This document shows, in pieces, positions 12,886 to 40,600 of a DNA stretch of 64,000 nucleotides; positions within the stretch are counted from its first letter, which is position 1, and the number at the start of each line of letters is the position of its first letter. The stretch comes from Macrostomum lignano. Taxonomy: Eukaryota. The DNA is taken from positions 28,636 through 92,635 of the forward strand of contig NIVC01003532.1 of the NCBI GenBank assembly GCA_002269645.1, in the 5' to 3' direction. Under the pieces are notes generated by a model, which saw nothing but the letters and a program-made list of their open reading frames with translations, was not told the DNA's origin and ran no database searches. A program made the translations under genes and the position numbers.

Positions 12886-14598
12886 ATGGCCAAGCAGCGA
12901 ATGCTCATAGCAGCTCAGCATCGAGTTTCAACATACTTTGGTACACCTGACACGCGACAATTGGTACAAACAGGTAAGAGCAAGGTGCTGCGGTACTACA
13001 AAAACAGCACACCTGGTGGAAGAGCGTCCTCCGTGCCGCAGACTCTGGACTTCCGCAATCAGCGATGGGACACGAGTGGAATGCCCGCCTCGATTCCACA
13101 ACACCTGTGGGACATGAGACGAGAGGAGAACAGGTGGCAGTCCTTCCACCTGCCAGATGCCAGCTTCACAGCGGCTCACCTGGTGTCCGTGACGGATCTG
13201 GCTGCTGACGGATTCTTCTACCTGCAGGAGTCGGACAGAGTAAAGTGTGCATTCTGCAAGGGTGTGCTCAAGGACTGGGAGGCGGGCGAGCAGGTCCGAG
13301 AGGCTCACAGACGCCACTTCTCCACCTGTCCGTTCGTGCTGTTCGTCGAGGTCGGCAACGTGCCTCGAGACCACAGAGAGCCGGAAGGAGTCTCGAGGTC
13401 AGCAAAGCTGGTAGAGGCAGTGCAATGCTGTGATCAGACTGCAGATGATGATGCAGCAGTGATGGTGAACGGAGACTGGAGCATGAATCTGGTCGCTGAG
13501 CTACCACCGATGGAGTTCGCTGGACTGAACGAGTGGGCGCTGGCGACACGCGCAACTATTGGAACGAATGCAGAACGCGTTGTGGACGATAAGCTGGTTG
13601 CTTTCGACATGATGAAGGGTCCTCAGCTTCCAGTGTCGAGTGAGGTAGCGAGATCTGCGTGCTCCGAGAGAGCTCTCACGAACCTGTCCGCTCTGCAGCA
13701 CAGTGTCGAGAGTGATCCATCGAGTGTGACTGCCAAACACGCACAGTTCGAGACCTACCAAGCGAGGTCGCAGTCTCTGCACTCGGCTCTCGTTCAGCAG
13801 CCAGTGTACTTGCTTGCAAAGGCGGGCTTCTTCTACTCGGAAGCCGAGAGAGCGACCTGCTGCTTCAGCTGCGGACTCTGCATGAGCGAGTGGAGCTGCG
13901 ACGATGATGTGTGGGTTGAGCACGCCAGGTGGTCACCTCGGTGTCCTCACGTGTTGTTGGAGCGAGGTAGCGACTTTGTACAGGCGGTGCATCGACTGTC
14001 GCCTCCCGTGCAGCACCCGACTTGTGGCGCCTCTGCTCAGCGTCACACTGCATTGGTACAGACGGACTCAACTGCATCAGCAGGTGCTGCGACTGTCGAC
14101 GGGTCCGCAGTCCGCAGCAGTCGCGCAGACGAGGCTCTCGCAGTCACTCCTGGAGTCGAGTTTAGAGTCGAGGCCAGAGACATCAAGGCGAGAGCCGACC
14201 TGCCCGTTGTGAGACTGCTCACTCAACTCGGATTCTCCGCCCTGCAAGTGAGACTGTTCACAGAGCTGCATCTCAGACAGCGAGGCGATGACTTTGCCAC
14301 ATCGGAGCTGTTCCTCGACTTCATGCTCACCGAGAGCCGCCGCATGCGCAAGCAGTCGCAGGACCCGGAGGCGTTCTTCGAGAGCAGGATGTCTCAGATT
14401 CGGGAGTCTCTGAACCAACAGCCGAGACACCGAGACACAACCGACTGGAAGACGTGCAAGGTGTGCATGGACAAGGAGGTGAACATCATGCTGCTGGACT
14501 GTGGTCACGTGGCCTGCTGCTCAGTGTGCGCCAAGTCGCTGAAGACCTGCCCCATCTGCAGGGCCTTCATCCGTGGCTCAGTGTTTATTAAGATGTAA
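12886..14598 (+). CDS. IAP copy 3: BIR-BIR-UBA-RING; upstream in-frame extension (ATG 12640) broken by TAA 12808-12810
   Basis: Intact 570-aa ORF with both BIRs and RING. The upstream frame translates MNHLNFRSVLQWQLDS...DISDVELTSNAV...*...SLAVALKAIADTEM, homologous to the copy 4 N-terminus. Confidence 0.88.
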   Translation: MAKQRMLIAAQHRVSTYFGTPDTRQLVQTGKSKVLRYYKNSTPGGRASSVPQTLDFRNQRWDTSGMPASIPQHLWDMRREENRWQSFHLPDASFTAAHLVSVTDLAADGFFYLQESDRVKCAFCKGVLKDWEAGEQVREAHRRHFSTCPFVLFVEVGNVPRDHREPEGVSRSAKLVEAVQCCDQTADDDAAVMVNGDWSMNLVAELPPMEFAGLNEWALATRATIGTNAERVVDDKLVAFDMMKGPQLPVSSEVARSACSERALTNLSALQHSVESDPSSVTAKHAQFETYQARSQSLHSALVQQPVYLLAKAGFFYSEAERATCCFSCGLCMSEWSCDDDVWVEHARWSPRCPHVLLERGSDFVQAVHRLSPPVQHPTCGASAQRHTALVQTDSTASAGAATVDGSAVRSSRADEALAVTPGVEFRVEARDIKARADLPVVRLLTQLGFSALQVRLFTELHLRQRGDDFATSELFLDFMLTESRRMRKQSQDPEAFFESRMSQIRESLNQQPRHRDTTDWKTCKVCMDKEVNIMLLDCGHVACCSVCAKSLKTCPICRAFIRGSVFIKM

Positions 14599-17012: not shown

Positions 17013-18407
17013 GCTCTGCAGAATATAGCTCGTACCGTATATTCTGTGGCTAAGCTCTGCAGAATATACTGTATATTCTGTGGCTAGGCTCTGCAGAATA
17101 TACTGTATATTCTGTGGCTAGGCTCTGCAGAATATACTGTATATTCTGTGGCTAAGCTCTGCAGAATATACTGTATATTCTGTGGCTAGGCTCTGCAGAA
17201 TATACTGTATATTCTGTGGCTAAGCTCTGCAGAATATACTGTATATTCTGTGGCTAAGCTCTGCAGAATATACTGTATATTCTGTGGCTAGGCTCTGCAG
17301 AATATACTGTATATTCTGTGGCTAAGCTCTGCAGAATATACTGTATATTCTGTGGCTAAGCTCTGCAGAATATACTGTATATTCTGTGGCTAGGCTCTGC
17401 AGAATATACTGTATATTCTGTGGCTAAGCTCTGCAGAATATACTGTATATTCTGTGGCTAGGCTCTGCAGAATATACTGTATATTCTGTGGCTAAGCTCT
17501 GCAGAATATACTGTACATTCTGTGGCTAAGCTCTGCAGAATATACTGTATATTCTGTGGTTAAGCTCTGCAGAATATACTGTATATTCTGTGGCTAAGCT
17601 CTGCAGAATATACTGTATATTCTGTGGCTAGGCTCTGCAGAATATACTGTATATTCTGTGGCTAAGCTCTGCAGAATATACTGTATATTCTGTGGCTAAG
17701 CTCTGCAGAATATACTGTATATTCTGTGGCTAAGCTCTGCAGAATATACTGTATATTCTGTGGCTAAGCTCTGCAGAATATACTGTATATTCTGTGGCTA
17801 AGCTCTGCAGAATATACTGTATATTCTGTGGCTAGGCTCTGCAGAATATACTGTATATTCTGTGGCTAGGCTCTGCAGAATATACTGTATATTCTGTGGC
17901 TAAGCTCTGCAGAATATACTGTATATTCTGTGGCTAAGCTCTGCAGAATATACTGTATATTCTGTGGCTAGGCTCTGCAGAATATACTGTATATTCTGTG
18001 GCTAAGCTCTGCAGAATATACTGTATATTCTGTGGCTAGGCTCTGCAGAATATACTGTATATTCTGTGGCTAGGCTCTGCAGAATATACTGTATATTCTG
18101 TGGCTAAGCTCTGCAGAATATACTGTATATTCTGTGGCTAAGCTCTGCAGAATATACTGTATATTCTGTGGCTAAGCTCTGCAGAATATACTGTATATTC
18201 TGTGGCTAAGCTCTGCAGAATATACTGTATATTCTGTGGCTAAGCTCTGCAGAATATACTGTATATTCTGTGGCTAAGCTCTGCAGAATATAGCTCGTAC
18301 CGTATATTCTGTGGCTAAGCTCTGCAGAATATAGCTCGTACCGTATATTCTGTGGCTAAGCTCTGCAGAATATAGCTCGTACCGTATATTCTGTGGCTAA
18401 GCTCTGC
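17013..18407. repeat. 34-bp minisatellite, about 40 units (GCTCTGCAGAATATACTGTATATTCTGTGGCTA[A/G])
   Basis: Direct reading; near-identical units with no spacers. Confidence 0.95.
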
Positions 18408-19741: not shown

Positions 19742-21897
19742 TGCTTGTCTCGCCCGCCATGTCGGAGGTATCTCGTCATCTTGATTTGCCTGACAATGCA
19801 ACGGCGCGACTGCTGGCTCTGCTGCCTGACTGCAGAAAAGCTCTGCCTTGGCTGACATTGATGTCAACTCGCTTGGCCTGCAGTGCAGGTATCTGGAATG
19901 AAGGGTGATTTTTTAATTCTTATGTACGAGTATCACACAATCGTGTCCCCCTACGGACTCTAGCCATAGTCGTTCCATTTACGAGCCTTATCTTTTCACT
20001 CCCTTTACACGTAAATTGTTCCTGCATCTAGCCTAGGTTATCCAGCTTTGGTGTGTGGTTATTTTACAGGTACTTTGTTTAATTTATGTGGCGTTTCTTG
20101 TGGATTTCTCAGCCCTTTCAGACTTTTGTGACCCTCGAATTATAGCATTCCAATCTCAGAGGTCAATTGTCAAAGAATAGTCCTGCGGACTATACTCATA
20201 TTCGCGTCAACTCAGTCACGGAAGTATCGCAGCGGTGAGATGGTATGGTATAGCGACAGTATTAAGCATTTAACCCTCTAGCAAGCTTTACTAATTAAGT
20301 GGTTTTTAGAATGATTGGATATTGAAGGCAAAAGAAGGCAATATGCGTATATAGCGATGAATTACTATAGAAACGATGAAAAAGGAAAATACACAATTGT
20401 TGAGCGAGATGCTCTTTAGCTACGAGTATATGGTCAATAAAAAGTTATAATTTCTGCGTGCAGGCGTACAACACAGAGACCAATAAATAATTAACAAGTG
20501 CAGGGCGGTCGACAAGTTGCAATCAATGGCCACTATAGAAGTCCTTTGTAGTCTATAGAAGTTCTAGTGGTCCTTGGTTGCAATTTACGTTACATGTACA
20601 AATATGTTAAGCTAACTGATCGGTACTGTCTTGTTATCGCAAGACCTTTAGACAAAGACGGTAACGGAGAAGTAACAAAGACAGCTTAAATGAACACGCT
20701 TAGTTCGCCCAGAGGCTGCATGAGTATCTATACAAATTTCGTTAAATTTTTCACCTTGGCTAACCTAAATCCTGTCTGCCCAGCATTCTAAAGACGGTAT
20801 CAACTCACACAACTCAGCCAGGAACACAGCTACCCTCCCCCTGAGCTTGACGAACTCAGCAGCGGAGCAGCCGAAGCTCCTCGTTGCACCCCAGTTTGTT
20901 CAAATCTCCCTAGACTCTCGGAAATTCCGGCACCGATTTAAACTCACATCAACATGGAACTCATTTGACATCATGGCAATATATACAACTAGTATAGTAC
21001 GCCTGGTAGCATTTGATGTTGAGGTAGGTAGGCAAAGACAGGTACGTCGTGCTTGATCACCACTAGCTAGCTAACAGCACTCGACTCACCCTTCGGCACC
21101 CAGCCAGAGCCAAGACCAAAATAAGCCCCCGTCTTAAAAAAGTAATTCATCTAACTTTGGTAATTGGTAATCTAAATGTTGGCCTACTACGGGTGCGGGG
21201 TGCCTACCTGTCTTTGCGGGGGGGGGGGGACTTTGCCTACCTACCTCAACTCAACCTCAATCGCATCGCTCAATGCTACCAGTGGAACCAGCTGTACTGT
21301 ACTAGTTGTATTCATAGCATAGCTAAATTATTTATTACTACGTTAGGCCTAATTCAAACTTTAGTTATTTTTAACATCTTTCGATCCAATGCTTGTGTTC
21401 AGTATTTGTAGTGTTGTGTGTGGAATGAAATGTCATTATCGCCTTATCGGGTTTTTTTATCCAATTTCAATTATGTTTAGGCCTAGCCATAATTTTTAGG
21501 GCCTAGGGCCTAGTCTAAGTTTTAAATTAAAAATAAAATAGACCATACATAAATTAATGAATTAAGTTATTGTAGCCCAGCTCACAGCGAAATAAGTCCT
21601 AGTCCATGACATTTAATAGGCTAGCTTTTCCAAAAAGCTGCTTAGGATATATTCTAAAAATAGGCTATAGTTTTTGTCTGTCTTTCAATCTAAAAATAGA
21701 TAGAGTTTAGCATAGGTTAAAAATAGGTCTATGAACTATGGTGTAGCCTAAACCTAATTGAATGATTATTATATTGTCATTGTACTTTTACTTGTATTGG
21801 AAGGGTCTTACTTAAGCAGGCTAGGCCTGTAACAATGACAGGCTATGTTAAGGCCTAGGTAAAGCCTATAGGCCCTAGGCCTAGAGCAAGATAGGAG

Positions 21898-22330
21898 CAG
21901 GGGGTCAGCAAACTTAGGCCCATAGGCTAGGGCCTACATGTAGCCTGCAAATTCTTTCTAGGGCCCATTCAGCCCTTGGGTCTTTAAAACTTTACAATAG
22001 CAATCTGGTAGATTTTGGTCTAGTTAAGGTTTGTATCTTATTTAGTTATTATTTTCTCTTGTCTTTTTTATCTTTTCTCTTGTCTTTTTTCTTTCCTTTC
22101 CTCTCTTCTTTTCTTTCCTTTTATTTCAATTTCTTTCTCCTTTTTCCTTTCCTTTCTCCTTACCTTTCCTTCTTCTCTTCTTTTTCTTTCTTTTTTCCTT
22201 TTCTTTCTTTACTTCTTTTTTATTCCATTTCTATTTTTCTTCTTTATTCCCTTTTTTCTTCCCCTCTAGCTTGTAGTCATGTGCTAGGTTCTTTATTTGA
22301 CCCTTTAGGTAAAAAGTTTGCCAACCCCTA
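21898..22330. mobile_element. Degenerate hAT-type MITE
   Basis: Ends CAGGGGGTCAGCAAACTT and AAGTTTGCCAACCCCTA resemble the common hAT terminus CAGGGGTCGGCAAACT with the CpGs decayed. Internal polypyrimidine tract; no TSD found. Confidence 0.55.
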
Positions 22331-22744
22331 CCTTAGTGGCTTAGAAGCTATAATTTACTATTTGAAATTTCCAAAAATTAGAAATTAGGCCTAGGATTAG
22401 CCTTAGCTACTAGGGATAAAGATTTTGCTAACTCTAAAGTCTAATTCTAGCTAGATATCAAAAGAATCAAAAATTTAAATTTTAGGACTGAACCCAGTAT
22501 AATTAGTACAAGGATAAATTTAAAGGAGGCTACGTTTTAACACTTGCCATGGACTTTTCATTTGGTTCATTATTAGGCATTTTATCCAATCTAAGCTTAA
22601 AAAGCAAATTTTTACTTGAGACAAAGTGCAAAATTGCACCTTGTGCCCAATTTTAAAGTGCAATTTTAAGACTCAAAGTCAATGACATAGCCAGGAATTT
22701 CAATTGGGGGGTTGGCTTGGCTGGCCATGCCTTATGCCATTGCC

Positions 22745-22985
22745 ACTTTTGGTGCTGCAGGCTCTCATTTTGGTGCCACAAGCACTCATTTTGGTGCTGC
22801 AAGCACTCATTTTGGCACTGCAGGCACTCATTTTAGCACCACAAGCACTCATTATAGCACCACAGGCACTCATTTTGGTGCCGCAGACACTCATTTTGGC
22901 GCTGTAGGCACTCATTTTGGTGCTATAGGCACTCATTTTGGCACTGTAAGCACTCATTTTGGTGCCACAAGCATTCATTTTGGCA
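22745..22985. repeat. 21-bp tandem repeat (about 11 units), inferred ancestor ATTTTGGCGCCGCAGGCGCTC
   Basis: Units differ mostly at CG/TG/CA/TA positions. Confidence 0.85.
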
Positions 22986-25250
22986 TTGCATTGCCCCCCT
23001 GGCTATGCCATTGCTCAAAGTACTTTTTTTCTTTTCTCTTAAAAATTTTCCCTTTTTCTTATTTTAAGATTGCAAATGAGCTTAAAAGGATAAAAAAAGG
23101 TTATAAGACTATATATAGACTACATTTTCTTTTCAATTTTAGAGTGCAATTCAAAAATTTAGGGTGCATATGCATATTGCACACAAAAACATAGGAGAGG
23201 GGCAAGGAGGTGGTTGCCTCCCCTAGCCCCCTCTATAGCTAGCAATGATAATGCATGCCCCTTTTCTTTTAGGCTAAAAGGGTCATTATAGCCCTTAGTT
23301 AACTTAGTACAGTGCCCCTAGGCCTGCCCTTACTTATTTTTATAGTTAATATCTACCTACTTATTTTATATTTATATATCTACTTTTAATAATTGGGTTA
23401 GGCCCTATTAATTTTTCTTAAGATCACATAGTTTTTTGATTATAGAATTAGGCCTAAGATAGGCCCAAGGGTCACAATTTCTAGGATCTAAAAATGCTAA
23501 AATCCTGGACCTAGGATTCAATTTTTTAAGATCTTTAAAATCTTTAAAATCTTGTCCTTGGGATATCCAAGATTTATTCCTAGATTTTAGAAAATTTTAA
23601 ACAAATAAAGATCTTAGGATTGTTAAATACCAAGATTTTGGCATCTAGATCTTTAGTTAATATCATAGTATACATCCTTCAAAATACATTTTAAGACCAA
23701 AAAACTTTCTGTCTTGATGCCTTGATTCCCTAAAACTAAAACTCAGAATCCTTGATGCCTTTAAATAATCTTAATTTCTATCTCAAGGTCAAATTTTGTG
23801 TTTTAGTCATTTTTATCTAGATCCACATTGTAGTATTAGCCAACAAACAAATGGGCAATATGTCTTGGCTCTAGCATATTAGTCAAAACTTTGCTATTCA
23901 ATATACTACCTTGCCCTTGCCTTGCCCCAATCTACCTTGACCTTTTTGCAAATTTTTTCAATGCTACTTTAGGATTTAAATTGGGATCCTCTCTAACCTC
24001 TAATTTACTAGACTATATAGTTTTGTTTTAAGAAATGCTATTTAGTTTTTAACAACATTGTTTTAATTAGTCTAGTTGCAACTCTGTTTTTGTTTTTTCT
24101 CTTTTTTTTCTTTGTTTCCTTGGTATCTTTTTTATTTTTTGTTTATAGGGAAATCAATTAATATTGTGACTTATCTAGGCTAATAGTATCCTCATCTAGC
24201 TAGATTGGGCAGGTTGCCTAGGTATTATATATATAATCATTTTAAGAACTAAATACTATAAAAAGCCTATATCTAATCATCTAACTTTCTAAAGTTATAG
24301 TCATTGCCTATTATTTAATATTTAAGCTTAAAATTATATCAATATTCTTGAAGCCTTCTATTAATAAGTAAAATCAGTCAAATAGTAAAAGCTCAACATA
24401 ATAAATGTTCAACATTATTGTTAAAATTAAAATTTATAGTAAAACTTGACTTATAAAGAGGACTTTCTCCTAGAATTTTTCATTATATTAAAATAGAAAG
24501 AACAATAGAAGCACATAAAATTTGAGAATATAAGCTAACTTTTATATTGCACCTTCTAAAAAAATAATCAATTTGCCAGCCTTTTCTGCCATTTAAATAT
24601 ATAACAATTCTGAGGTTAGATTTTTCTTATAAATATTAGTGTTTTAAATATAGCCCCCTTTAACTTTCATCAGCAGCCTAACAACATTTGTCTGTATTAG
24701 CTCTGACTTTGTTGGTCTTTCATTGGCCTTCACCCAAGTAGAGCTTCTAGATATTTAGTTAGAGGTGAATGATAGTGTTTATAGACACCCTGTTACAAAT
24801 ATATACGTAGCAACATTGAAAGGTCGCCACCCTTCACCTAGCCAACCATTTTGTTATTAAAAATGCTTTTAAAAACAATGAAAACCGGGCAGAAGCTTCA
24901 ATCCATCTAGTCTTCGCCCTCTGCTCTTCCCAATCCCTCCTCACCCAGCTCAACTCTGTGTCATGTGGTGCAAGTTGCGTCACTCAAAAGTCAATAATGA
25001 GCTGGAATTTACTGCACACTCTCAATTGGTGGCGACTTTTTAATGTTGGTGAGTATATATGCTTCTATCTCTCATCAAGCGTTAACAGTGGGCAAACCTT
25101 GATTGCCAAACCTTAGCAATCAAGCATTAAAAATGGTTTTGTAAGTTGGATAACTCTCAATATTCATTCCAGTGGGTGAAAAAATGGCTTAGTATTCCTA
25201 TTGCTACTGTTAAGCAGATCTAAACCTCTAGTTAAAATTGCAGCAATCCA

Positions 25251-25500
25251 CCTATACTAAATCTCTAAGATTTGTATGCTTGCTTGCTTGCTTGTCTATC
25301 CATCCACCCCACCCCACCTATACTAAATCTCTAAGATCTGTTTGTTTTTCTGTTTGTAACGCTCTAGAAATTGCAGTTCTTGACCAATTTTGATCGCATT
25401 TTCGCCAAAAGATTCAAAATTGTTTGGAAAGAAGACAGTTAAAATTTCTTTAATCTGTTTCAATGCTAAAGGTATTCGAAAAACGAGTTTTCCTAATGCT
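25251..25500 (+). mobile_element. Non-autonomous Helitron-like (Lep1/HINE-type) repeat; related pieces at 29095-29260 and 57324-57570
   Basis: TATACTAAATCTCTAA start, (GTTT/GCTT)n microsatellite and AACGCTCTAGA.ATTGCA.TTCTTGAC shared with 57324-57390. TTGCACTGTTCGATCAGAA shared between 29161 and 57481. Confidence 0.45.
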
Positions 25501-25789
25501 TTAATGGGACTCCAAACCAGGTTGAATTCTTGACTGGCTGAGTTCCAATTTCAAAAATGATTGCGCCACAACTTTTCTCTATTCACTGTGTAGGCCCCAA
25601 TACTGGCTGCAGTGTGCAGGGGAGAGGAAAATGCTCAGGGGCTGCGTGTACATTCTGACCCTGGCTGACTGGCGGACTGCATAGACAATTGCTATTTATA
25701 GATTTCACTCAACTGTGCATTGGCTCTGCCGAAGTGCCGTAGCATATATGGCTGATTTTGTCTCCCCCGATCAATAGGCGGAGTAGCCG

Positions 25790-25856
25790 CGCTGTAGGCA
25801 CTAGGACTAGGTTTAGGCTAGGCGTAAGGTCCCAGGTTCGAGTCCCGGCCCCGGCT
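25790..25856 (+). mobile_element. tRNA-derived SINE head
   Basis: B-box GGTTCGAGTCCC with an upstream A-box-like TAGCCGCGCTGTAGG; no intact cloverleaf. Confidence 0.35.
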
Positions 25857-25942
25857 GACAATTTAAATTGAGTAAATTCATTTATTGGTAGCTTGTGCAT
25901 CGACTTATTGCAAAGTTTTTTCATGAATAGGAATTAAAACTA

Positions 25943-26551
25943 CACTCAGCAACAGTCAAAACCGCCACCCTACCGAGAGAGGCAACTTCTCTCTCACCTC
26001 AACTGCAAGTGACGTAACTTGCGCCACGGCGTGGCTAAAGCTGGGTGAGAGTGAATTCCAGGGTGAGAGTAAAAAAGGGACTGGGGTTGGGGTTGGGGGT
26101 GCAACAGTACACGTGACAATGGTCAGGCATATGACAGACGCTGAACGATGGCGCGCTGTTGGCATGCTAGAAGCTGGTGCATCCATCAGCGCAGTTCGAC
26201 AATTCAACGTTCAACAATTCGAGCGCTATTAACGAAGTCCCAAGATACTGGTAGTGTTCAACACGCAGCCATAGGCAGCCAGCGCCATGATCTCCGCGGC
26301 TCAACAGCCAGGGAAAATCGACGTCTGCTGCGGATTGTCAGGCGAACTCCGACCGCGCCAGCCACCCTGCTCCGTCTAATGTGGGGTGAAAGAAGCAGAT
26401 GGGGCATCCCATGTATCCCCTGATTGCCCTCTCCTGCATTCACTCTCACCCAGCTTTAGCCACGCCGTGGCACAAGTTACGTCACTTGCAGTTGAGGTGA
26501 AAGAGAAGTTGCCTCTCTCGATAGGGTGGCGGTTTTGACTGTTGTTGAGTG
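25943..26551 (+). mobile_element. Internally deleted Tc1-family transposon
   Basis: About 120-bp TIRs (CACTCAGCAACAGTCAAAACCGCC... and inverse ending 26551), TA on both sides. Internal MVRHMTDAERWRAVGMLEAGASISAV..TGSV..TARENRRLLRIVRR is a frameshifted paired-type HTH of Tc1/Tc3 transposases. Confidence 0.88.
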
Positions 26552-27879
26552 TATTTTTACTAATTAGCAATTAATTATTTTTGCTACTCGGCACAAGCCA
26601 GTAAGCAAATTTGATTTCTAAAAACTGCTTCGAGTATTACTGATCCCATCAATGGGTATTGCCTAGCTCAATGGAAGTATGAAATTGCTAAACTGCAGAC
26701 GATGATAAGAGACTGCTGAAGGTATTGCTAAATGCTGAGTTGTGCAAAAGACTGCCGATATGCATCGAAAATGGATAAGTGAGCCACACAATGCTGGGCA
26801 AATTTCTAGATTGTTAAAAGGATCATTCATGCAGACCTTCCAGACTTATGAGTGTATAGCTGCAAACTGCTGAGGGGATAACTATCTACAGAGTTTTGAG
26901 TGGATTAAGTGCAACTTTGCTGAGGGGACAGTTCTAGGCCGCTAAGGGTAAAGTGTTAAATGTTCATGAAAGTTTTAGACTGCAAAGTGGATAAATGCAG
27001 ACTGCTAAGAGATGACTGCAGTCTGTTTTGCGGCATAAGATGAAGGGATAATTTCAGGTTGTTCTGGGGATAACTGCCGATTTCTGGGGGGTTAACTTCA
27101 AACTGCTGAAGTTACTAAACTTCTTGAATAGTAGAAGGTTTATTTCGACCATCTGTCAATAGGCGTAATAGCCGCAGTAGGCAGGCAGTAACAGGCATAG
27201 ACTGAAGGTCGGCAGTTCGAGCCTGAATTGAAGTAGCGAATTTATTTCTGACCTGTGACAATATTTACTGTCTACTATACAGATTCCTGCAGATTTTTAA
27301 CATTTAATATTAAATGTACTTTTGCTGGATCTGCGTTAATCTTCTAGAACAGTGCTACTCTGATGTAAATGCTAATTTACAGGAGGTATTACTAATCTGG
27401 GTGAGCAGCGCTAATCGGGGAGAGCAGTGCTAATCTGATGTACTGATGTGTTCCTTATTACCAGTCCTCAACTGTAATCAAGGAACACTCACTTCTAGCT
27501 CGGTAGCTAGGCAACCCAGTAAGTCAACAGAAGGTATTTAATTACCTTGAATCCTTATGAGATATCTCTTCAATGTGGATCTCGTGTAGATCTCGTCTGT
27601 AGTTGTGTGAATCTCAGTTGATCTGATAGATCAGGCGCCTTGGTTCTTCAGTTGCTCTGGTCCTGGTTCCTCTTGTACTTCCGATGAAGTTGTTCCGGCC
27701 GGTATCTGTCGTTCGGACCAATAGGAAGCTTCCAAATTAACAATGGGTACCCTGCGCCAAACTGCGGTATCGTCTAAGCCTTCTCTTTCTAGCAGTGGCT
27801 CTATGCACTCTAGGAATAGCTCCGGAAAGCTGCTGTCAAAGCTCATGGGGATAATTACTGGAATGCTGTGGCTGTTGGG

Positions 27880-28700
27880 GGAATTGCCGAGATTGTTAAA
27901 GTAAGGTAAGGGTTAAACCATAAATGAATTGGCCTGTCAAACAGAAAATACTCATTGGGGAATGTCAAGGCTCATGGGGGTATCTGAAATATACTGTGGC
28001 TCAAGGCTCAGGAGGAATTGCTGTGATTGCAAAACATGGGGATATTGCCGAAATTCTGTGCCTCAAATAGGAGTTGCTGAGATATCAAGACTCATTGGGG
28101 AATTGCTGTGCTGTCAAAGCTCATGGGGTATCCGTGTAATGCTGTACGCTGTGGCTCTTGGGGTATTGCTGAGATGCTAGGGTTCACATGGGAACGGCTA
28201 GGATGTCAAAGGCTCATATGGGAATTAATAAAATTCACGAAATGTCAAGGTTCATTGGGAAATTATTGAAATGCAGTGACTCGACAGGGTTAGGGTTAGG
28301 GTCAGTTTTGATTCAAACATAGAATAACCGCTCTGTCAACCATAAAAGACTTGCTAAGATAGAATTGCTAAGATATCAAGGCTCATGGGGGGAATCGCTG
28401 AGTTACCAAGGCTCATGAAGAAATTGCAGAGATATCAAGGCTCATAAGGGGATTGCTGAATTGTAGGGGAGAGGTGAGTTGGGTTGCTGGGATGTCAAGG
28501 CTTACTGGGCTGGGAGAATTGCGTAGATGTCAAGGCTCAAGTATAATTGCTGCGATGTCGAGGCTTACTGAGGAAATTTCTGAGATGTCAAGGCTTACTG
28601 GGGATTCGGGGAAATTGCTGAGATGTCAAGGCTTACTGGGGGAATAGCTGAGATGTCAAGGCTTACTGGGGGAATTACTGAGATGTCAAGGCTCATGGGG
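27880..28700. repeat. Degenerate tandem repeat of about 30-33 bp (GCTGAGATGTCAAGGCT(T/C)A(C/T)GGGGGAATT); short relative at 60105-60160
   Basis: Recurring GTCAAGGCT core. Confidence 0.7.
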
Positions 28701-29732
28701 GGTGGCTGAATTGTTGGGGGGAGGGAGTAGGTTTCTGGGCGATTGTCAGATAGTCAAGTAGTACGGCTCAAGTAGCTCATTTAGTTCAGATAATGAAAAT
28801 GTACACGTAAGTGATCCTAATTTCTGCTAATAGGAAATACCAGCGTATTTATTAAAGGTTTGATTCTCTGAGTTAGGCTAATAAAGAGGGGTCTAAGGCC
28901 GTCAGGGATTGGCATATTAAGCTTCTGCAGACCATAATATAACTAGGCCAATAACGATACGCACTAAGAGTTTTGCTTGAAAGGATAAGCACTATTTGCT
29001 AATTTAAAAAGGGAAAGACAAGCGCTAAACTGATAAAAAGCCACCCGGAGGGGGCTAAATGGCTAGTCCATCCATTAAACTAAATTCCATTAAACTAAAA
29101 ATGGTCTGTCGGTAGGTATGTGTAATCGATTCTAGAAAAAATGGCTCATCTTTTTCGAACTTGCACTGTTCGATCAGAAATTTTTCCGTGACGGTACAAG
29201 TGTCTTGGCTAAGAAATTGCTCAATGCTAAAGGGATTAAATATTCAAAAAACATGCTTTTTTGCAAAGGTCAAGCAGCTCTTTCGACTTGAAATGCATTG
29301 TAAGAATGCTAGAGAAAAAACTGACTGGTTGAATTCTGATTCTGAAATAGATTGCATCACAATAGGCTTTTTATTTATTCAGTCTGTGTACTGGCTGAAT
29401 TTTGACACTCAATTGAATTGCGTCACAGCGTGGAAGCATAGCACAATACTTGATTTATATTGCGTAACCATATTGGTAACTTTATTAGAGACTGACTTGC
29501 CTAAGAAATTGATTGTCATAACTGCTTCGTGTGACTTTTACTCTAGCTGACTTGGTGTGAGTGTTGAATTATAAGTGCTACAAATTCACTTATAAATTCG
29601 ATGAGAGCTAGCCTAGAGGTGAACAGACTGGACTGCTAATGCAGCGACCTGGGATCGAATCTTAGTACTGTAAAAAAAAGTAATGTAATTTTTTTATTGA
29701 AAGCTTTTATTAAAATATTAATTAAAAGGTCC

Positions 29733-31540
29733 TGGATTACTGCACTTGATAAACCAAGGACTACTGCACTTGATAAACCAAGGACTACTGCACTTGATAA
29801 ACCAAGGACTACTGCACTTGATAAACCAAGGATTACTGCACTTGATAAACCAAGGACTACTGCACTTGATAAACCAAGGACTACTGCACTTGATAAACCA
29901 AGGATTACTGCACTTGATAGGCTAAGGATTACTGCGCTTGATAAACCAAGGACTACTGCACTTGATAAACCAAGGACTACTGCACTTGATAAACCAAGGA
30001 CTACTGCACTTGATAAACCAAGGATTACTGCACTTGATAGGCTAAGGATTAATGCACTTTATAAACCAAGGACTACTGCACTTGATAAACCAAGGACTAC
30101 TGCACTTGATAAATCAAGGACTACTGCACTTGATAAACCAAGGATTACTGCACTTGATAAACCAAGGATTACTGCACTTGATAAACCAAGGACTACTGCA
30201 CTTGATAAACCAAGGACTACTGCACTTGATAAACCAAGGATTACTGCACTTGATAGGCTAAGGATTACTGCGCTTGATAAACCAAGGACTACTGCACTTG
30301 ATAAACCAAGGATTACTGCACTTGATAGGCTAAGGATTACTGCGCTTGATAAACCAAGGACTACTGCACTTGATAAACCAAGGATTACTGCACTTGATAA
30401 GCTAAGGATTACTGCACTTGATAAACCAAGGACTACTGCACTTGATAAACCAAGGACTACTGCACTTGATAAACCAAGGACTACTGCACTTGATAAACCA
30501 AGGATTACTGCACTTGATAAACCAAGGACTACTGCACTTGATAAACCAAGGACTACTGCACTTGATAAACCAAGGATTACTGCACTTGATAGGCTAAGGA
30601 TTACTGCGCTTGATAAACCAAGGACTACTGCACTTGATAAACCAAGGACTACTGCACTTGATAAACCAAGGACTACTGCACTTGATAAACCAAGGATTAC
30701 TGCACTTGATAGGCTAAGGATTAATGCACTTTATAAACCAAGGACTACTGCACTTGATAAACCAAGGACTACTGCACTTGATAAATCAAGGACTACTGCA
30801 CTTGATAAACCAAGGATTACTGCACTTGATAAACCAAGGATTACTGCACTTGATAAACCAAGGACTACTGCACTTGATAAACCAAGGACTACTGCACTTG
30901 ATAAACCAAGGATTACTGCACTTGATAGGCTAAGGATTACTGCGCTTGATAAACCAAGGACTACTGCACTTGATAAACCAAGGATTACTGCACTTGATAG
31001 GCTAAGGATTACTGCGCTTGATAAACCAAGGACTACTGCACTTGATAAACCAAGGATTACTGCACTTGATAAGCTAAGGATTACTGCACTTGATAAACCA
31101 AGGACTACTGCACTTGATAAACCAAGGACTACTGCACTTGATAAACCAAGGACTACTGCACTTGATAAACCAAGGATTACTGCACTTGATAGGCTAAGGA
31201 TTAATGCACTTGATAAACCAAGGATTACTGCACTTGATAAACCAAGGACTACTGCACTTGATAAACCAAGGACTACTGCACTTGATAAATCAAGGACTAC
31301 TGCACTTGATAAACCAAGGATTACTGCACTTGATAAACCAAGGATTACTGCACTTGATAAACCAAGGACTACTGCACTTGATAAACCAAGGACTACTGCA
31401 CTTGATAAACCAAGGATTACTGCACTTGATAGGCTAAGGATTACTGCGCTTGATAAACCAAGGACTACTGCACTTGATAAACCAAGGATTACTGCACTTG
31501 ATAAGCTAAGGATTACTGCACTTGATAGAGCAAGGATCAT
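29733..31540. repeat. 24-bp minisatellite (GGA(C/T)TACTGCACTTGATAAACCAA), about 75 units, with a 672-bp higher-order duplication
   Basis: Direct reading; rare variant units recur 672 bp apart (about 30050/30722 and 30111/30783). Confidence 0.95.
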
Positions 31541-31704
31541 TGCACTAGATAATAAAATGATTCTTGCACTATCTTAGAAGCGGATAATTGCGCTGAAAAA
31601 AAAGAGATTATTGCGCTAGCTGAGACATGGATTATTGCACAACCTGAGAAAGCGATTATTTCATTAGCGGAGGAAATATTTGCACTAGCTACTTGCTGTC
31701 TAAT

Positions 31705-32644: not shown

Positions 32645-34630
32645 ATGACGAACTTAATGTCAGTTAGTAATTGGCTAACAGACTCCGCCGTCAATCAACC
32701 GCAAAATGTAGTACTAAATAACACATTCGCCACATCAGAGAGGGATTCCGATATATTAGACTATGAGATTACGAGCAATGCTGTCATACCAACTGAGGCA
32801 TTGATACCAATATTACCTACTCCATGCAACTTAGCAAACAATAGTACGAAAGACTCCTTAGCTGTTGCACTGAAAGCCATAGCTGACACTGAAATGACTA
32901 AGCAGCGAATGCTCATAGCAGCTCAGCTTCGAGATTCAACGCAAATTCAACTTCAGTACTTCAGTACACCTGACACGCGACAATTGGTACAAACAGGTAA
33001 GAGCAAGGTGCTGCGGTACTACAACAACAGCACACCTGGTGGCAGAGCGTCCTCCGTGCCGCAGACTCTAGACTTCCGCAATCAGCGATGGGACACGAGT
33101 GGAATGCCGGCCTCGATTCCACAACACCTGTGGGACATGAGACGAGAGGAGAACAGGTGGCAGTCCTTCCACCTGCCGGATGCCAGCTTCACAGCGGCTC
33201 ACCTGGTGTCAGTGACGGATCTGGCTGCTGACGGATTCTTCTACCTGCAGGAGTCGGACAGAGTAAAGTGTGCATTCTGCAAGGGTGTGCTCAAGGACTG
33301 GGAGGCGGGCGAGCAGGTCCGAGAGGCTCACAGACGCCACTTCTCCACCTGTCCGTTCGTGCTGTTCGTCGAAGTCGGCAACGTGCCTCGAGATCACAGA
33401 GAGCCAGAAAGAGTCTTGAGTTCAGCAAAAATAGTAGAGGCAGTGCAATGCAGTGATCAGACTGCAGATGATGCAGCAGTGATGGTGAACAGAGACTGGA
33501 GCATGAATCTGGTCGCTGAGCTACCACCGATGGAGTTCGCTGGACTGAACGAGTGGGCGCTGGCGACACGCGCAACTATTGGAACGAATGCAGAACGCGT
33601 AGTGGACGACGAGCTGGTCGCTTTCAACATGATGAAGCGTCCTCAGCTTCCAGTGTCGAGCGAAGTAGCGAGATCTGCGTGCTCCGAGAGAGCGCTCACG
33701 AACCTGTCCGCTCTGCAGCACAGTCTCGAGAGTGAGCCATCGAGTGTGACTGCCAAACACGCACAGTTCGAGACCTACCAAGCGAGGTCGCAGTCTCTGC
33801 ACTCGGCTCTCGTTCAGCAGCCAGTGTACTTGCTTGCAAAGGCGGGCTTCTTCTACTCGGAAGCCGAGAGAGCGACCTGCTGCTTCAGCTGCGGACTCTG
33901 CATGAGCGAGTGGAGCTGCGACGATGATGTGTGGGTTGAGCACGCCAGGTGGTCACCTCGATGTCCTCACGTGTTGTTGGAGCGAGGCAGCGACTTTGTA
34001 CAGGCGGTGCATCGACTGTCGCCTCCCGTGCAGCACCCGACTTGTGGTGCTTCTGCTCAGCGTCACACTGCATTGGTACAGACGGAATCAACTGCATCAG
34101 CTGGTGCTGCGACTGTCGACGGGTCCGCCGCCACTACTGCAGTCCGCAGCAGTCGCGCAGACGAGGCTCTCGCAGTCACTCCTGGAGTCGAGTTCAGAGT
34201 CGAGGCCAGAGACATCAAGGCGAGAGCCGACCTGCCCGTTGTGAGACTGCTCACTCAGCTCGGATTCTCCGCTCTGCAAGTGAGACTGTTCACAGAGCTG
34301 CATCTCAGACAGCGAGGCGATGACTTTGCCACATCGGAGCTGTTCCTCGACTTCATGCTCACCGAGAGCCGCCGCATGCGCAAGCAGTCGCAGGATCCGG
34401 AGGCGTTCTTCGAGAGCAGGATGTCTCAGATTCGAGACTCTCTAAACCAACAGCCTAGACGCCGAGACACAACCGACTGGAAGACGTGCAAGGTGTGCAT
34501 GGACAAGGAGGTGAACATCATGCTGCTGGACTGTGGTCACGTGGCCTGCTGCTCAGTGTGCGCCAAGTCGCTGAAGACGTGCCCCATCTGCAGGGCCTTT
34601 ATTCGCGGCTCCCTATTTTTTCGTGAGTGA
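32645..34630 (+). CDS. IAP copy 4: variable N-terminus + BIR-BIR-UBA-RING
   Basis: 661-aa uninterrupted ORF from ATG; BIR and RING zinc motifs intact; 12-bp linker insertion (AATT). Confidence 0.93.
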   Translation: MTNLMSVSNWLTDSAVNQPQNVVLNNTFATSERDSDILDYEITSNAVIPTEALIPILPTPCNLANNSTKDSLAVALKAIADTEMTKQRMLIAAQLRDSTQIQLQYFSTPDTRQLVQTGKSKVLRYYNNSTPGGRASSVPQTLDFRNQRWDTSGMPASIPQHLWDMRREENRWQSFHLPDASFTAAHLVSVTDLAADGFFYLQESDRVKCAFCKGVLKDWEAGEQVREAHRRHFSTCPFVLFVEVGNVPRDHREPERVLSSAKIVEAVQCSDQTADDAAVMVNRDWSMNLVAELPPMEFAGLNEWALATRATIGTNAERVVDDELVAFNMMKRPQLPVSSEVARSACSERALTNLSALQHSLESEPSSVTAKHAQFETYQARSQSLHSALVQQPVYLLAKAGFFYSEAERATCCFSCGLCMSEWSCDDDVWVEHARWSPRCPHVLLERGSDFVQAVHRLSPPVQHPTCGASAQRHTALVQTESTASAGAATVDGSAATTAVRSSRADEALAVTPGVEFRVEARDIKARADLPVVRLLTQLGFSALQVRLFTELHLRQRGDDFATSELFLDFMLTESRRMRKQSQDPEAFFESRMSQIRDSLNQQPRRRDTTDWKTCKVCMDKEVNIMLLDCGHVACCSVCAKSLKTCPICRAFIRGSLFFRE

Positions 34631-36086
34631 AGGCTGTGTAGTTTTTTAGCACTAGGTAAAACGTTGCACGAATTGTTTTCCATAGAAACAATAACTGTTG
34701 GATTGTTAGCGCATAATGGGGCGGAATCAAAGAGAAGAATAATTAGTGAGTTTTTTGGATCCTTACTAGCAGTTTTTTGTAGGCAAGTCATCTTCAAGTT
34801 GAGACCTTGTCACAATTTATTTTAACAAGTTTTTGATTTCATAGTCGCTTAGTCGCTTAATGACATTTATGCTACTTTTCAGTTTGGTTTTTCCTTGCAA
34901 ATAGATTCATCGCTTCAGATAGCAAGAATACCATATTTTTAATTTATCGCATCTATTTATAGCATTTGTGACATTAATACTTACATTAGTTGGTTTTCAT
35001 CTTTCTGTGCAATATTATTACTGCGTAATGTATAATGCACTTGTACATTACTTGTACATTACTTGTACATTACTTGTACATTAGTTCGTATAATTTTGTC
35101 ATATGTACGTAGGATAAGCGTTTACGAGTATTTAGACGTCACCGTGTGGATATTCAGTGGATCTATCATCGATGCAAGCACCCACGCCTAATCGGTAACT
35201 TCTACACCATTACCTTCAATTTCATTCAAGTTCCAATTCACGTTGCACAATCGGAAGCTCAACTTCGACACTTCTAGCTCTGGATAACAATCTATATTCA
35301 TTTAAGACAAACTCCTTTTTAATATCGATAGAAAGCACAAATTTGTATGGGGAAGAAAGCCTATATGTTGTTGGCACTGCCAAAACTCCTTTTCATTTTT
35401 GTCAAACTCCAATTCATATCAAAAAAATTTTTGACGCAACTTCTATGAACTCTGATCAAAGTTCGTCAAAGTACTCCAACATCGTTTATCTACACCCACT
35501 TTCGTCGGGTTCCATTCCATGTCTTTTAAAGCCGTTTATTTTCGTAGCAAAAAGGTAGCATGGCTAGAAGTGTCGAAGTTAAGCCATGGCAACAGTACGT
35601 GCCATTGTACGTGTACATTCATACCCATGCGTAATCTGATGTGTTCATACTGAATATTGCCCTTTTTTACAGTGTACTGCAACGCAAGCATTGAAGAATG
35701 AACGTCATTATATACGCTCGTATTTCATAAGGTTTTCAGCTTAATACATCATTTTTAACCTGTTGCATATGCAGCTTATTTTGCTGGCCTTGCATCAGAC
35801 GTTGCAGACCGATTTTGTTAAGTTTTATGTATCTGCTATTGCTTTAAAGTTCTTACTAGCTTTTGTTACCAAACTGGTGTTTCTTATTTAAACTAAATGA
35901 TTTCCAAGAGTTTGGAGCAAATGAGGCTTCATACTCAATTTACCACTTAATCAAGGACTTGACCAAGTGACTGTCGAAATAGCACAAATAAGGCTGGTTT
36001 ACTTCACACTTTTGCCAGAATATTCGCTGGTCAAATATTGCTCAAAACTTTATGTTGGCCTTTAATCAAATCATAAGTATAACTGT

Positions 36087-37450
36087 AGCCCAATTAGTCG
36101 GCCATCAAATCACAGGTACAATAGTTGCTGTACCCCAATTAGTCAGCCATCAAATCACAGGTACAATTGTTGCTGTACCCCAATTAGTCAGCCATCAAAT
36201 CACAGGTACAATTGTTGCTGTACCCCAATTAGTCGGCCATCAAATCACAGGTACAATTGTTGCTGTACCCCAATTAGTCAGCCATCAAATCACAGGTACA
36301 ATTGTTGCTGTACCCCAATTAGTCAGCCATCAAATCACAGGTACAATTGTTGCTGTACCCCAATTAGTCGGCCATCAAATCACAGGTACAATTGTTGCTG
36401 TACCCCAATTAGTCAGCCATCAAATCACAGGTACAATTGTTGCTGTACCCCAATTAGTCGGCCATCAAATCACAGGTACAATTGTTGCTGTACCCCAATT
36501 AGTCAGCCATCAAATCACAGGTACAATTGTTGCTGTACCCCAATTAGTCAGCCATCAAATCACAGGTACAATTGTTGCTGTACCCCAATTAGTCAGCCAT
36601 CAAATCACAGGTACAATTGTTGCTGTACCCCAATTAGTCAGCCGTCAAATCACAGGTACAATTGTTGCTGTACCCCAATTAGTCAGCCATCAAATCACAG
36701 GTACAATTGTTGCTGTACCCCAATTAGTCAGCCATCAAATCACAGGTACAATAGTTGCTGTACCCCAATTAGTCAGCCATCAAATCACAGGTACAATTGT
36801 TGCTGTACCCCAATTAGTCAGCCATCAAATCATAGGTACAATTGTTGCTGTACCCCAATTAGTCGGCCATCAAATCACAGGTACAATAGTTGCTGTACCC
36901 CAATTAGTCAGCCATCAAATCACAGGTATTGTTGCTGTACCCCAATTAGTCAGCCATCAAATCACAGGTACAATTGTTGCTGTACCCCAATTAGTCAGCC
37001 ATCAAATCACAGGTACAATTGTTGCTGTACCCCAATTAGTCGGCCATCAAATCACAGGTACAATTGTTGCTGTACCCCAATTAGTCAGCCATCAAATCAC
37101 AGGTACAATAGTTGCTGTACCCCAATTAGTCAGCCATCAAATCACAGGTACAATTGTTGCTGTACCCCAATTAGTCAGCCGTCAAATCACAGGTACAATT
37201 GTTGCTGTACCCCAATTAGTCAGCCGTCAAATCACAGGTACAATTGTTGCTGTACCCCAATTAGTCAGCCGTCAAATCACAGGTACAATTGTTGCTGTAC
37301 CCCAATTAGTCAGCCGTCAAATCACAGGTACAATTGTTGCTGTACCCCAATTAGTCAGCCGTCAAATCACAGGTACAATTGTTGCTGTACCCCAATTAGT
37401 CAGCCGTCAAATCACAGGTACAAGTAACTGTACCCCAATTAGTAGGCCAT
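36087..37450. repeat. 45-bp minisatellite, about 30 units (GGTACAATTGTTGCTGTACCCCAATTAGTCAGCCATCAAATCACA)
   Basis: Direct reading. Confidence 0.95.
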
Positions 37451-38289
37451 AAAATAACAAATACAAGTAACTATACCCTAATTAGTCAGCCATAAAATCG
37501 CAGGTAAGATTGACAGTCTGCACCCAAGTATTCAGCCTTTGTATCACAGGTACAAGTGGTATTGGAGTACACTAAAGGCAATTGAAGGCATGTACTAAAG
37601 GCTTTTTCTGCTGCAAAATCAGCTGCTTTTGTGGTTTATCCTGCAAAAACCCCGTTTGCCAACTCTGCAAGCACGCGGAATTAAAGAGCATGGGAGAGCA
37701 GTTTGTTACCAGACTGTAGAGAAATCCAATGTAAATCAAATCACTCTAGATCTCTGGTGATTACGCAGTAATGCCTGTTCTGTAATTTTATAAATCGTGG
37801 ATGAGAAGTCCAGATTTTACGGTTTTATTGGCTGGGTTGATGGGTAGTGCCCGATTTCTAACTGACTTGCCTATTGATTAGGAAATAATTACAGTATATC
37901 AAATACGTAACAATATTTGCTCTATATTTATTGCAATATAAGAGTTCACTCTCTTCTCTTATGTCTCCTCTTTTTCTCACTTCTCTCTCATCTCTACTGC
38001 TCTCTCTGTGCGACCCCATATTCACAAGCTTCTTAATGTGCTACCCGTGGATTTTGAACCGCTGAATTCCAATCCCAGTCCAATTTCAATTCCAATTCCA
38101 CTTCCAATCCCAGGAACTGTTTTTGCATACATATTTAAATTTGAAATCTTATATTTTAACAAAAAACTTGTTGAGATGGAGGTAAACAAAAATGAAGTGA
38201 ATTCGTGTTAAATTAAGATATTTGAGGCGAGCATTGATCTCATCAGCTGGGGTACAGTTACCTCTTCAAACTCTGACCTCTGGCTTCTG

Positions 38290-38850
38290 CCTCTCTCCAT
38301 CACTAAGGTCCCTTGAAACTTCTCTGTTCTCTTCTCTCTTCTCTCTCTCCTGTCTTCTGTCTCATCTCTTCTTTCTTCTCGTTCTTATCTCCTTTCTTTT
38401 CTCATCTATCATCTACATGTATTTCGTCCTCCTCCCTCTCTTCCCTCCTCTCTCTGCTCTCTTATCTCCTCGCTGCTCTCATCTCTGCTCTCATCTCTCC
38501 TCTCTGCTCTCTCCTCTCTCCTCTCTCTCTTCTTTTTTCTTCTCTTATCTCTTTCTCTCGTCTCTGCTCTTTCCTCTCTCCTCTCTCTCCTTTTTTCTCT
38601 CATCTCTTCACTCTCTTTTCTCTCGTCTCTGCTCTCTGCTCTCTCATCTCTCATCCCTACTCTCTCCTCTCTTCTCTTCTCTCTAGTCTCTCTAGTCTCT
38701 CCTCTCTTCTCTTCTCTCTAGTCTCTCTAGTCTCTCCTTTCTTCTCTCTCTCTTTGCTCTCCCATCTTCTATCTCTAATCTCGTCCTCTCTCATCTCTCC
38801 TTGCTCCGCTCTCTCATCTCTTCCCTCTTCTCTTCCCTCTCTCCCCCTTT
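38290..38850. repeat. CT-rich low-complexity tract
   Basis: Almost purely C/T sequence. Confidence 0.9.
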
Positions 38851-40074: not shown

Positions 40075-40600
40075 TTACTCACCCGGTGCCACCTGTTGAA
40101 GGTGCCGACGGCGTCCGGGTAATAAATGAAGGCTCGAGAGACTAGCTGAGAATGTCTGACGGTTGATTCTTGCCCACTGTCGAGGCTTGATCGGCGAAAC
40201 TAGAGAAATCCGCATCAGGGTGTCCATACTCACCTGGTGCCACAGCTGTTGAGGGTCCAGAAGCTCCACCTGGGTGAAGGCTAGTGACCAACGAAGTCAG
40301 AAGTGATGCAGACACATGTGGTCGACGTGCTGATGAAATTTGGAGACTTGGCAAGGCTGCACTGAGGCGCAGTGCTGATTGGCGCACAGGGGTGTACTGA
40401 ATACACTAGCGCTTATGGGAAAAATCCGACCTTGTGGCAGAATCGTCGAATATCTCGACGGTCCGGAGGGCTGGCGACTTGATTCTTGTTTAAGAAGGTG
40501 CGCAACAAAAAGTTAGCCCGTGTTCTTGAATTTCGTGTGCCTGCGTTGCTCCGTTTTGGCGCAGCAAAAAAAATTGTCAGGCAGGGGGAAATTTCCCCCC
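40075..40600 (+). pseudogene. Degenerate copy of an unidentified coding-like segment (homologous to 60900-61410 minus and 24660-24800)
   Basis: Reads ...MQTHVVDVLMKFGDLARLH*...KKLARVLEFRVPALLRFGAAKK versus MQTNVIDVLMKLRDLARLHW...KKLARVLEFPVPALLQYGAAKK in the other copy; contains stops. Confidence 0.5.

Follow-up and report, generated by a model that had tools for sequence, protein, structure and literature searches.

How does a segment of animal DNA more than 3 kb long come to be almost free of CpG dinucleotides when equally AT-rich DNA nearby keeps them? The segment in question lies at positions 21450-24805 (3356 nt, 32.7% G+C) of a 64-kb window of the Macrostomum lignano genome; the window, meaning the whole stretch of DNA analyzed here, is the final 64 kb of contig NIVC01003532.1 (assembly GCA_002269645.1), and window positions equal record positions minus 28635. 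The segment, hereafter the block, contains exactly 4 CpGs (at 21588, 22533, 22882, and 22900) where 88.7 are expected (observed-to-expected ratio [o/e] 0.045; Poisson P = 6e-33), and the closest CpGs outside it are at 21448 and 24806. A preliminary description of the window, made by eye, had named the same four sites and had likened the block to the product of repeat-induced point mutation (RIP) in fungi. From the comparisons below, the block reads as native, repeat-derived, noncoding M. lignano DNA whose cytosines have been turned to thymines on both strands. The best reading of its origin, to which we give about an even chance, is dense, locus-confined cytosine methylation with cumulative deamination of 5-methylcytosine.

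Composition sets the block apart from the rest of the window. AT-rich spacers elsewhere have CpG o/e values of 0.8-1.1, and the 195 nt adjoining the block on its left hold 6 CpGs where 6.5 are expected. The other CpG-poor stretches of the window, at 17033-18407 (34 bp x 40), 29734-31552 (24 bp x 76), and 36083-37506 (45 bp x 32), are homogeneous minisatellites whose units lack CpG; the block is not dominated by tandem repeats (about 15% tandem; 10-mer uniqueness above 0.94). The reported enrichment of TpA-type motifs holds when counted: the block has 35 CTAGs where 9.9 are predicted from composition, a 3.5-fold excess, the remainder of the window has 139 where 233 are predicted, and CCTAGG, AGGCCT, and TAGGCCTA are 16-72 times denser inside the block than outside (42-fold for CCTAGG and 72-fold for TAGGCCTA). 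The dinucleotide signature (o/e for CG, 0.04; GC, 1.66; CC/GG, 1.54; AG/CT, 1.30; AC/GT, 0.64; CA/TG, 0.90; TA, 0.95) is uniform across every 400-nt sub-block. Coding capacity in the block is limited to low-complexity or satellite open reading frames (ORFs), with about 70 stop codons per reading frame.

Evidence for how this composition arose comes from repeats within the block that have sister copies 16-37 kb away. The sampled M. lignano DNA amounts to about 222 kb, made up of the window and loci L002-L009. Standard blastn searches with the block as query, run on the window and on other loci, returned only a satellite and two short matches near the right end. A transition-tolerant local aligner, built on a log-odds matrix that allows C>T and G>A and calibrated on shuffled 200-mers (which reach at most 34 bits), matched the block to window positions 40.2-40.8 kb at 126 bits. 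The shared element is a dispersed repeat with two further copies in the window, here called the 40-kb and 61-kb copies (40076-40621 matching 61405-60961), both of which are richer in G+C and in CpG than the block copy (Table 1). When 24433-24804 was realigned to 40627-40204 under symmetric scoring, to avoid the circularity of a C>T-tolerant matrix, the differences comprised 30 C>T and 31 G>A against 2 T>C and 4 A>G, with transversions at 23 for C>A plus G>T versus 4 for A>C plus T>G. A three-way MAFFT alignment of the block and both copies (284 ungapped columns) assigns changes to lineages: 69 to the block (46 G:C>A:T transitions, 7 A:T>G:C transitions, and 16 transversions), 16 to the 40-kb copy (2, 8, and 6, respectively), and 22 to the 61-kb copy (8, 4, and 10). 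The transition asymmetry is therefore 46 versus 7 in the block and 10 versus 12 in the sister copies jointly (Fisher p = 4e-4), and both the direction of change and its specificity to this locus are observed directly. Changes other than C>T number 23 in the block and 14 in each sister copy, making the block branch about 1.6 times theirs. Because sister copies on comparable branches keep a CpG o/e of 0.72 and show no GC>AT bias, the process was specific either to this locus or to a period of time.

Table 1. Location and character of the block, its component repeats, their reference copies, and other features (window positions unless a locus is named)
Feature	Position	Strand	Basis or characteristics
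CpG-free, AT-rich, G:C>A:T-hypermutated noncoding block, main body	21450-24805	.	CpG count, dinucleotide signature
CT-rich low-complexity tract with unique flank, C-depleted	21923-22321	+	Transition-tolerant search
21-bp satellite, 11 full units, from TTTTGGCGCCGC(A/G)(G/A)GCACTCA	22747-22990	+	Homology to CpG-bearing arrays
Hypermutated copy of dispersed ~0.55-kb repeat	24433-24802	+	G+C 0.29, 0 CpGs; aligns with 40627-40204 (-) and 60961-61275 (+); core blastn E = 6e-11
Unmutated sister copy (reference state; 40-kb copy)	40204-40627	-	G+C 0.51, 20 CpGs, o/e 0.72
Second unmutated sister copy (reference state; 61-kb copy)	60961-61275	+	G+C 0.48, 13 CpGs, o/e 0.72
Younger MITE-like insertion, apparent right boundary	24803-25060	.	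Inverted ends, CpG content, resumed homology
Mutated repeat and CpG-poor DNA past the insertion	25061-25300	+	CpG count, homology to sister copies
Second CpG-free block	L003 2915-4630		2 CpGs, o/e 0.06, CA/TG 1.26; SelK gene intron 1
Third CpG-free patch	L004 10062-10528		466 nt; intron
IAP paralogs, intronless (n = 6)	481-2295, 4182-6272, 12886-14598, 32645-34630, 45302-47107, 55008-57047	-, +, +, +, -, +	

The observed spectrum is dominated by CpG, and the excess mutation is not confined to that context. All 17 CpGs of the 40-kb copy that align with the block have been lost there, now reading TA in 8 cases, TG in 3, and CA in 3. In columns where the sister copies agree, the block shows G:C>A:T at 19 of 25 CpG bases and at 27 of 88 non-CpG G/C bases, while the reverse change occurs at 7 of 124; the non-CpG excess is thus roughly five-fold and differs from the sister copies at p = 0.019, and A and T sites of the repeat show a transition in only 5%. 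Overall, the repeat has lost 100% of its CpGs and about 31% of its non-CpG G/C. Outside CpG, the C>T fraction is 0.40 at CpA, 0.32 at CpT, and 0.24 at CpC, values that are not statistically distinguishable. No preference is seen for the 5' neighbor of mutated non-CpG cytosines (A, 0.27; C, 0.39; G, 0.34; T, 0.28; about 30 sites each), and the effect of neighboring G+C on the survival of non-CpG cytosines is weak and not significant (0.40 versus 0.30). The preliminary description had read CG>TG/CA/TA and CA/TG>TA changes in recognizable embedded sequences, and these are real. Its proposal of a localized C-to-T change at CpG plus CpA, exceeding plain CpG decay, is likewise borne out against the unmutated sister copies, near-complete at CpG, 40% at CpA, and on both strands. 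A RIP-type preference for CpA is not supported: the observed order of contexts is CpG >> CpA >= CpT >= CpC and not the CpA-dominated one of Neurospora.

A 21-bp satellite inside the block tells the same story without recourse to a phylogeny. Its homologs, an array at 6529-6998 of L002 and the counterpart in L006 (5800-5943 and 7085-7308), have normal CpG content and read GCACTCATTT(T/A)GGCGCCGC... The 22 ancestral CpG sites of the block array, two per unit, now read TG in 11 cases, CA in 8, TA in 1, and CG in 2, in combinations that vary from unit to unit. As TG and CA are each one transition from CG, and not from one another, the direction of change is fixed without an outgroup; as their fates differ between units, the changes were independent and later than the formation of the array. 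G>A and C>T account for 12 of the 14 non-CpG variants of the satellite, and A>G and T>C for none. The CT-rich tract is similarly depleted in C, its C/(C+T) being 0.29 compared to 0.46-0.59 in six other tracts (relatives lie at window 38460-38684 [+] and 61759-61902 [-] and in L002, L006, L008, and L009), which corresponds to a C loss of about 40-50%. In the satellite, 91% of the CpG sites are gone, as are about 8-12% of the other G/C bases. Since satellite and dispersed repeat have thus decayed unequally, the changes accumulated gradually, at a CpG rate some 10-30 times that of the rest, and not in a single burst. A further copy of the satellite is probably located in an intron of the M. lignano delta-aminolevulinate dehydratase gene, where it has been mis-called as exon: the protein model (UniRef A0A1I8GI...) contains a THFGAAG/THFSAAG heptad run that is the 21-bp satellite translated. 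This single M. lignano model was all that a protein search with the 160-aa satellite ORF returned, and it was of no help in locating copies. A similar search with a fragment of reverse transcriptase yielded only distant proteins, and none of them was attributed to M. lignano.

C>T changes in all dinucleotide contexts, far exceeding the reverse, could also be the work of a DNA deaminase, AID/APOBEC-like or of another kind, that was directed to the block, either as a mobile or extrachromosomal intermediate or as a transcribed or R-loop locus, and enzymes of this type are known in several invertebrate phyla (PMC5889660). Several features make this improbable. The 31 C>T and 30 G>A changes are interleaved at random (32 runs versus 31.5 expected), with no single-strand or strand-coordinated tracts; a 5' preference of the TC, CC, or WRC type is absent; the strong CpG preference is a signature of 5-methylcytosine; and different parts of the block have decayed to unequal degrees. 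The paper on invertebrate deaminases, moreover, reports no secure flatworm member of the family, its sole flatworm case sharing identical sequences with the snail host (PMC5889660).

The sharp difference in dinucleotide signature between block and flanks raises the possibility of foreign or artifactual DNA, be it a contaminant, a chimeric join, a CpG-free vector, or a horizontal acquisition from a genome poor in CpG, and about 2.3 kb of the block (21450-21920, 22320-22747, and 22990-24430) has no homolog in the 222-kb sample. However, three separate M. lignano repeats are embedded in the block and a host element, resembling a miniature inverted-repeat transposable element (MITE), is inserted in it, so the block is native and not foreign, contrary to the contaminant origin that the preliminary description had kept in view. 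The mutated repeat continues beyond that inserted element, DNA of the same class with the same motifs is found in introns on other contigs, and comparison of the block with plasmids, phages, and a CpG-free vector gave no match. Together, these observations leave a foreign origin only the slightest probability.

The inserted element also changes how the edges of the block are understood. It is about 250 bp long, with 33-nt inverted ends (24799-24831 and 25028-25060, 85% complementary) and TATATA(T) on both sides, and it holds 6 CpGs (o/e 0.51). Directly behind it, 25061-25105 aligns with the next portion of both the 40-kb and 61-kb copies, and 25061-25300 contains 1 CpG against 8.0 expected. 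A younger repeat family starts at about 25300-25320; its copies in L005 are 82-85% identical and keep most CpGs intact. The mutated DNA thus totals about 3.6 kb, with a younger element interrupting it. The block had been described as sharply bounded, with CpG returning at 24806; the return is real, but the right edge is an insertion junction and not the limit of the process, as CpG-poor DNA resumes at 25061. Terminal repeats or a target-site duplication flanking the block as a whole were not found. Other features lie close to the block. To its right is a probable young terminal-inverted-repeat element, with 122-nt inverted repeats at 25935-26056 and 26438-26559 (96% identical) enclosing about 380 bp, and a second element of this type ends in perfect 20-nt inverted repeats (21018-21037 and 21231-21250). 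CpG depletion is intermediate in the adjoining 5 kb on the right (24806-29700; o/e about 0.45-0.6, compared to 0.8-1.1 in spacers elsewhere); the process may have acted more mildly there, or older and younger pieces may be mixed.

Would homology-triggered point mutation of the Neurospora kind produce such a block? The mutated DNA is repeat-derived, its transitions are G:C>A:T, the product is AT- and TpA-rich with frequent CpA>TpA, and sub-windows at 21001-22500 are positive for the composite RIP index. For the whole block, TpA/ApT is 1.15, above the threshold of about 0.89, but (CpA+TpG)/(ApC+GpT) is 1.41, where RIP calls for a value below about 1.03, and the composite index is negative (-0.26). 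The CpA/TpG deficit that the preliminary description had set as its test is therefore absent relative to ApC/GpT. Ordinary AT-rich windows of M. lignano likewise exceed the TpA/ApT threshold and score composite-positive. Nor is duplication the trigger. The window contains six IAP duplicates within 60 kb, 95-98% identical to one another across 1.4-1.6 kb, and these are untouched (CpG o/e 0.85-0.98), as are the sister copies of the mutated repeats themselves. The prime target is CpG and not CpA, and both RIP and the RID-type enzyme are regarded as fungus-specific (PMC7882544). True RIP therefore seems highly implausible here, if somewhat less so than a foreign origin.

We instead favor dense methylation of cytosines by DNMT3 and DNMT1, restricted to this segment and taking place in germ line or stem cells; methylation as the cause, and whatever targets this segment, we infer. 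Spontaneous deamination of 5-methylcytosine would then have changed C to T at nearly every CpG and, outside CpG, at about a quarter to 40% of the cytosines. CpG-derived TG and CA would in part have been converted onward to TA, which would explain a residue rich in TAG, CTA, CCTAGG, and AGGCCT: AGGCCT, CCTAGG, and CTAG are the words that would be left after removal of C before G or A and of G after C or T, and CCWGG and CCGG, to judge from the context table, may have become words containing CTAG. The weaker non-CpG component (CpA >= CpT >= CpC) could reflect off-target non-CpG methylation or faster deamination in AT-rich DNA; its order resembles the off-target preference of DNMT3. At both edges the block meets younger sequence, on the left DNA of normal CpG content and on the right the MITE-like element, and neither edge marks a limit of enzyme reach. 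CpG dominance, TG and CA on either strand, a cumulative pattern, and a bimodal distribution of CpG o/e are together the expected footprint of dense 5-methylcytosine and its deamination. In contrast to planarians and parasitic flatworms, M. lignano has kept both DNMT1 and DNMT3 and has low-level 5-methylcytosine, whose genomic pattern is unknown according to reviews (PMC9246332, PMC11292947, PMC10658182). Our literature search found neither a methylome map of M. lignano nor a report of RIP-like mutation in animals.

The bimodality is apparent in 279 nontandem 500-bp windows from the first 180 kb of sampled M. lignano DNA, where the main mode of CpG o/e lies at 0.8-0.9, ten windows fall below 0.1, and none falls between 0.1 and 0.2. 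Two further CpG-free patches were located, both in introns (Table 1). The TAGGCCTA-rich, CpG-poor DNA around the L003 block has motifs in common with the block in the window and no homology to it, and it is interrupted by a CpG-rich MITE. This MITE (L003 1486-1780), which has CAGTGTTGGGCA... ends, is rich in CGTTAA, and is inserted in the CpG-free SelK intron, has a partial copy at window 47671-47861. The two are 92% identical and share 5 of 5 aligned CpGs, so there is no obvious sign that CpG is still being lost there. Both of their transition differences read TG in the window copy and TA in the L003 copy.

Several observations weigh against dense methylation as the whole explanation. CA/TG in the block is not raised (0.90), unlike in classical CpG decay. 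CpG methylation alone does not account for C>T outside CpG, which is in excess about five-fold; that excess itself is drawn from one 284-column alignment (p = 0.019), satellite variants, and a low-complexity tract, and three sequences are too few to root the block branch at the non-CpG positions of the dispersed repeat. The block also lies outside any credible gene body, so that the usual invertebrate rule of gene-body methylation is not obviously applicable. The sole gene model across it is BOX15_Mlig029966g1 in GenBank (685 aa), which extends over 30 kb (window 4227-34630, +), beginning with the second IAP gene and ending at the fourth one's stop codon. The model is probably chimeric, a fusion of two near-identical IAP paralogs 30 kb apart, which would place the block in a false intron. 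Finally, younger insertions within CpG-free DNA (the MITE at 24806-25053 and the L003 MITE) keep their CpGs, and the process may no longer be acting on such DNA, an observation equally compatible with a past and with a targeted regime.

A past regime is the main live alternative, and it would explain why young insertions inside the patches retain CpG. On this account, the patches are relics of the oldest noncoding DNA, from an era of heavier germ line methylation or poor repair of deaminated cytosine, and CpG-normal DNA came later through transposon bursts and duplications. The bimodal CpG o/e with sharp edges at insertion junctions, the CpG retained by younger MITEs, the presence of patches in introns as well as intergenic DNA, and a repeat-rich genome with very young duplicates all agree with this, as does the longer branch of the block in change classes unaffected by the process (23 versus 14 and 14). 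Yet the sister copies are only modestly younger and nevertheless show no GC>AT bias (10 versus 12) and keep a CpG o/e of 0.72; the conserved genes sampled (ARMC9, a metallophosphatase, and TIR genes in L004) have no CpG-poor windows; and DNMT1, DNMT3, and measurable 5-methylcytosine are still present according to the literature. We consider a relic origin unlikely on balance, although it is the strongest competitor to locus-confined methylation and deamination.

The preliminary description had gone further and raised the possibility of an undescribed genome-defense mechanism. The data do not show one, as methylation-driven deamination by way of DNMT1 and DNMT3 explains most of them; most of the pattern is a known process in an undescribed place, with a non-CpG anomaly in addition. 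M. lignano might have, or might recently have had, a locus-targeted hypermutation of cytosine that removes CpG completely and also hits CpA, CpT, and CpC in selected repeat-derived DNA. Such mutagenic silencing in an animal, based on a DNMT or a deaminase, would be analogous in function to RIP but targeted by, for example, small RNAs or chromatin state and not by duplication, and we rate this as doubtful, somewhat more so than a relic origin.

The block is set in a tandem array of intronless inhibitor-of-apoptosis (IAP) genes, between which lie AT-rich spacers, many minisatellites, and dispersed repeats. The IAP paralogs encode two BIR domains and a C-terminal RING (the RING was not detected in the copy at 481-2295) and have 58% G+C amid AT-rich surroundings. 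The nearest relatives of their proteins are 88-96% identical and all from M. lignano, and further IAP copies are present on at least 5 other contigs. These similarities suggest a young, lineage-specific expansion of IAP genes in M. lignano. No identical protein is on record for the 661-aa IAP ORF. A separate ORF of 662 aa (window 40929-42917, -) has a middle part made of twelve 81-bp (27-aa) repeats that are 99% identical (41717-42688), and its C-terminal 260 aa have a sub-threshold match to FkbM methyltransferase (PF05050; E = 0.003, 18 bits against a cutoff of 22.7). Additional minisatellites are located at window 53658-54032 (16 bp x 24) and L007 1-2211 (24 bp x 92). Several of the minisatellites imitate long ORFs and several are CpG-free merely because their unit has no CpG; a search of the genome for CpG-free blocks will therefore have to mask them. 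Rfam and tRNA scans covering the entire window gave no match.

Free-living flatworms are the sole platyhelminth group to have kept both DNMT1 and DNMT3, and the genomic site of their methylation is unknown (PMC9246332). CpG-free blocks in a CpG-normal genome therefore offer a prediction, from sequence only, of where methylation is or was concentrated, namely, in repeat-derived intergenic and intronic patches rather than in gene bodies. If the non-CpG component were to hold genome-wide, it would mean that an animal silences selected DNA by mutating it and would provide a natural system for the study of DNMT targeting in a regenerating stem-cell model. Because hypermutated blocks escape ordinary similarity searches, the transposon annotation of M. 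lignano under-counts old copies.

Among known systems, RIP in Neurospora crassa and other Ascomycota resembles the block in its G:C>A:T changes in repeat-derived DNA, its AT- and TpA-rich product with frequent CpA>TpA, and the fact that this product is hardly recognizable by ordinary BLAST. The block differs in that its mutation is not triggered by duplication, CpG is the main target, the composite index is negative, and the host, an animal, has no known RID-type enzyme. In Basidiomycota, the hypermutation of transposable elements, for example, at TCG in Microbotryum, also consists of C>T changes in repeats with a CpG preference and is thought to be linked to methylation (PMC3318451), but it is fungal and prefers the TCG trinucleotide, whereas the block is from an animal and shows no 5' neighbor preference. 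APOBEC3 footprints in vertebrate retroelements are similar in that single copies carry a large G>A or C>T excess over their sister copies. However, those footprints are on one strand, clustered, context-specific, and made on cDNA before integration, while in the block both strands are affected, the changes are randomly interleaved, and CpG comes first. Methylation-driven CpG decay, as seen in animal genomes with mosaic methylation, shares with the block the loss of CpG, its direct replacement by TG or CA depending on the strand, a CpG rate excess of about 10-30 fold, and a bimodal CpG o/e, and the enzymes it depends on are retained in M. lignano. Compared to that process as it is known, depletion in the block (o/e 0.045) goes far beyond that of a typical methylated gene body in invertebrates, the affected DNA is intergenic and repeat-derived and not a gene body, an excess of non-CpG C>T is added, and the TG and CA intermediates have largely gone on to TA.

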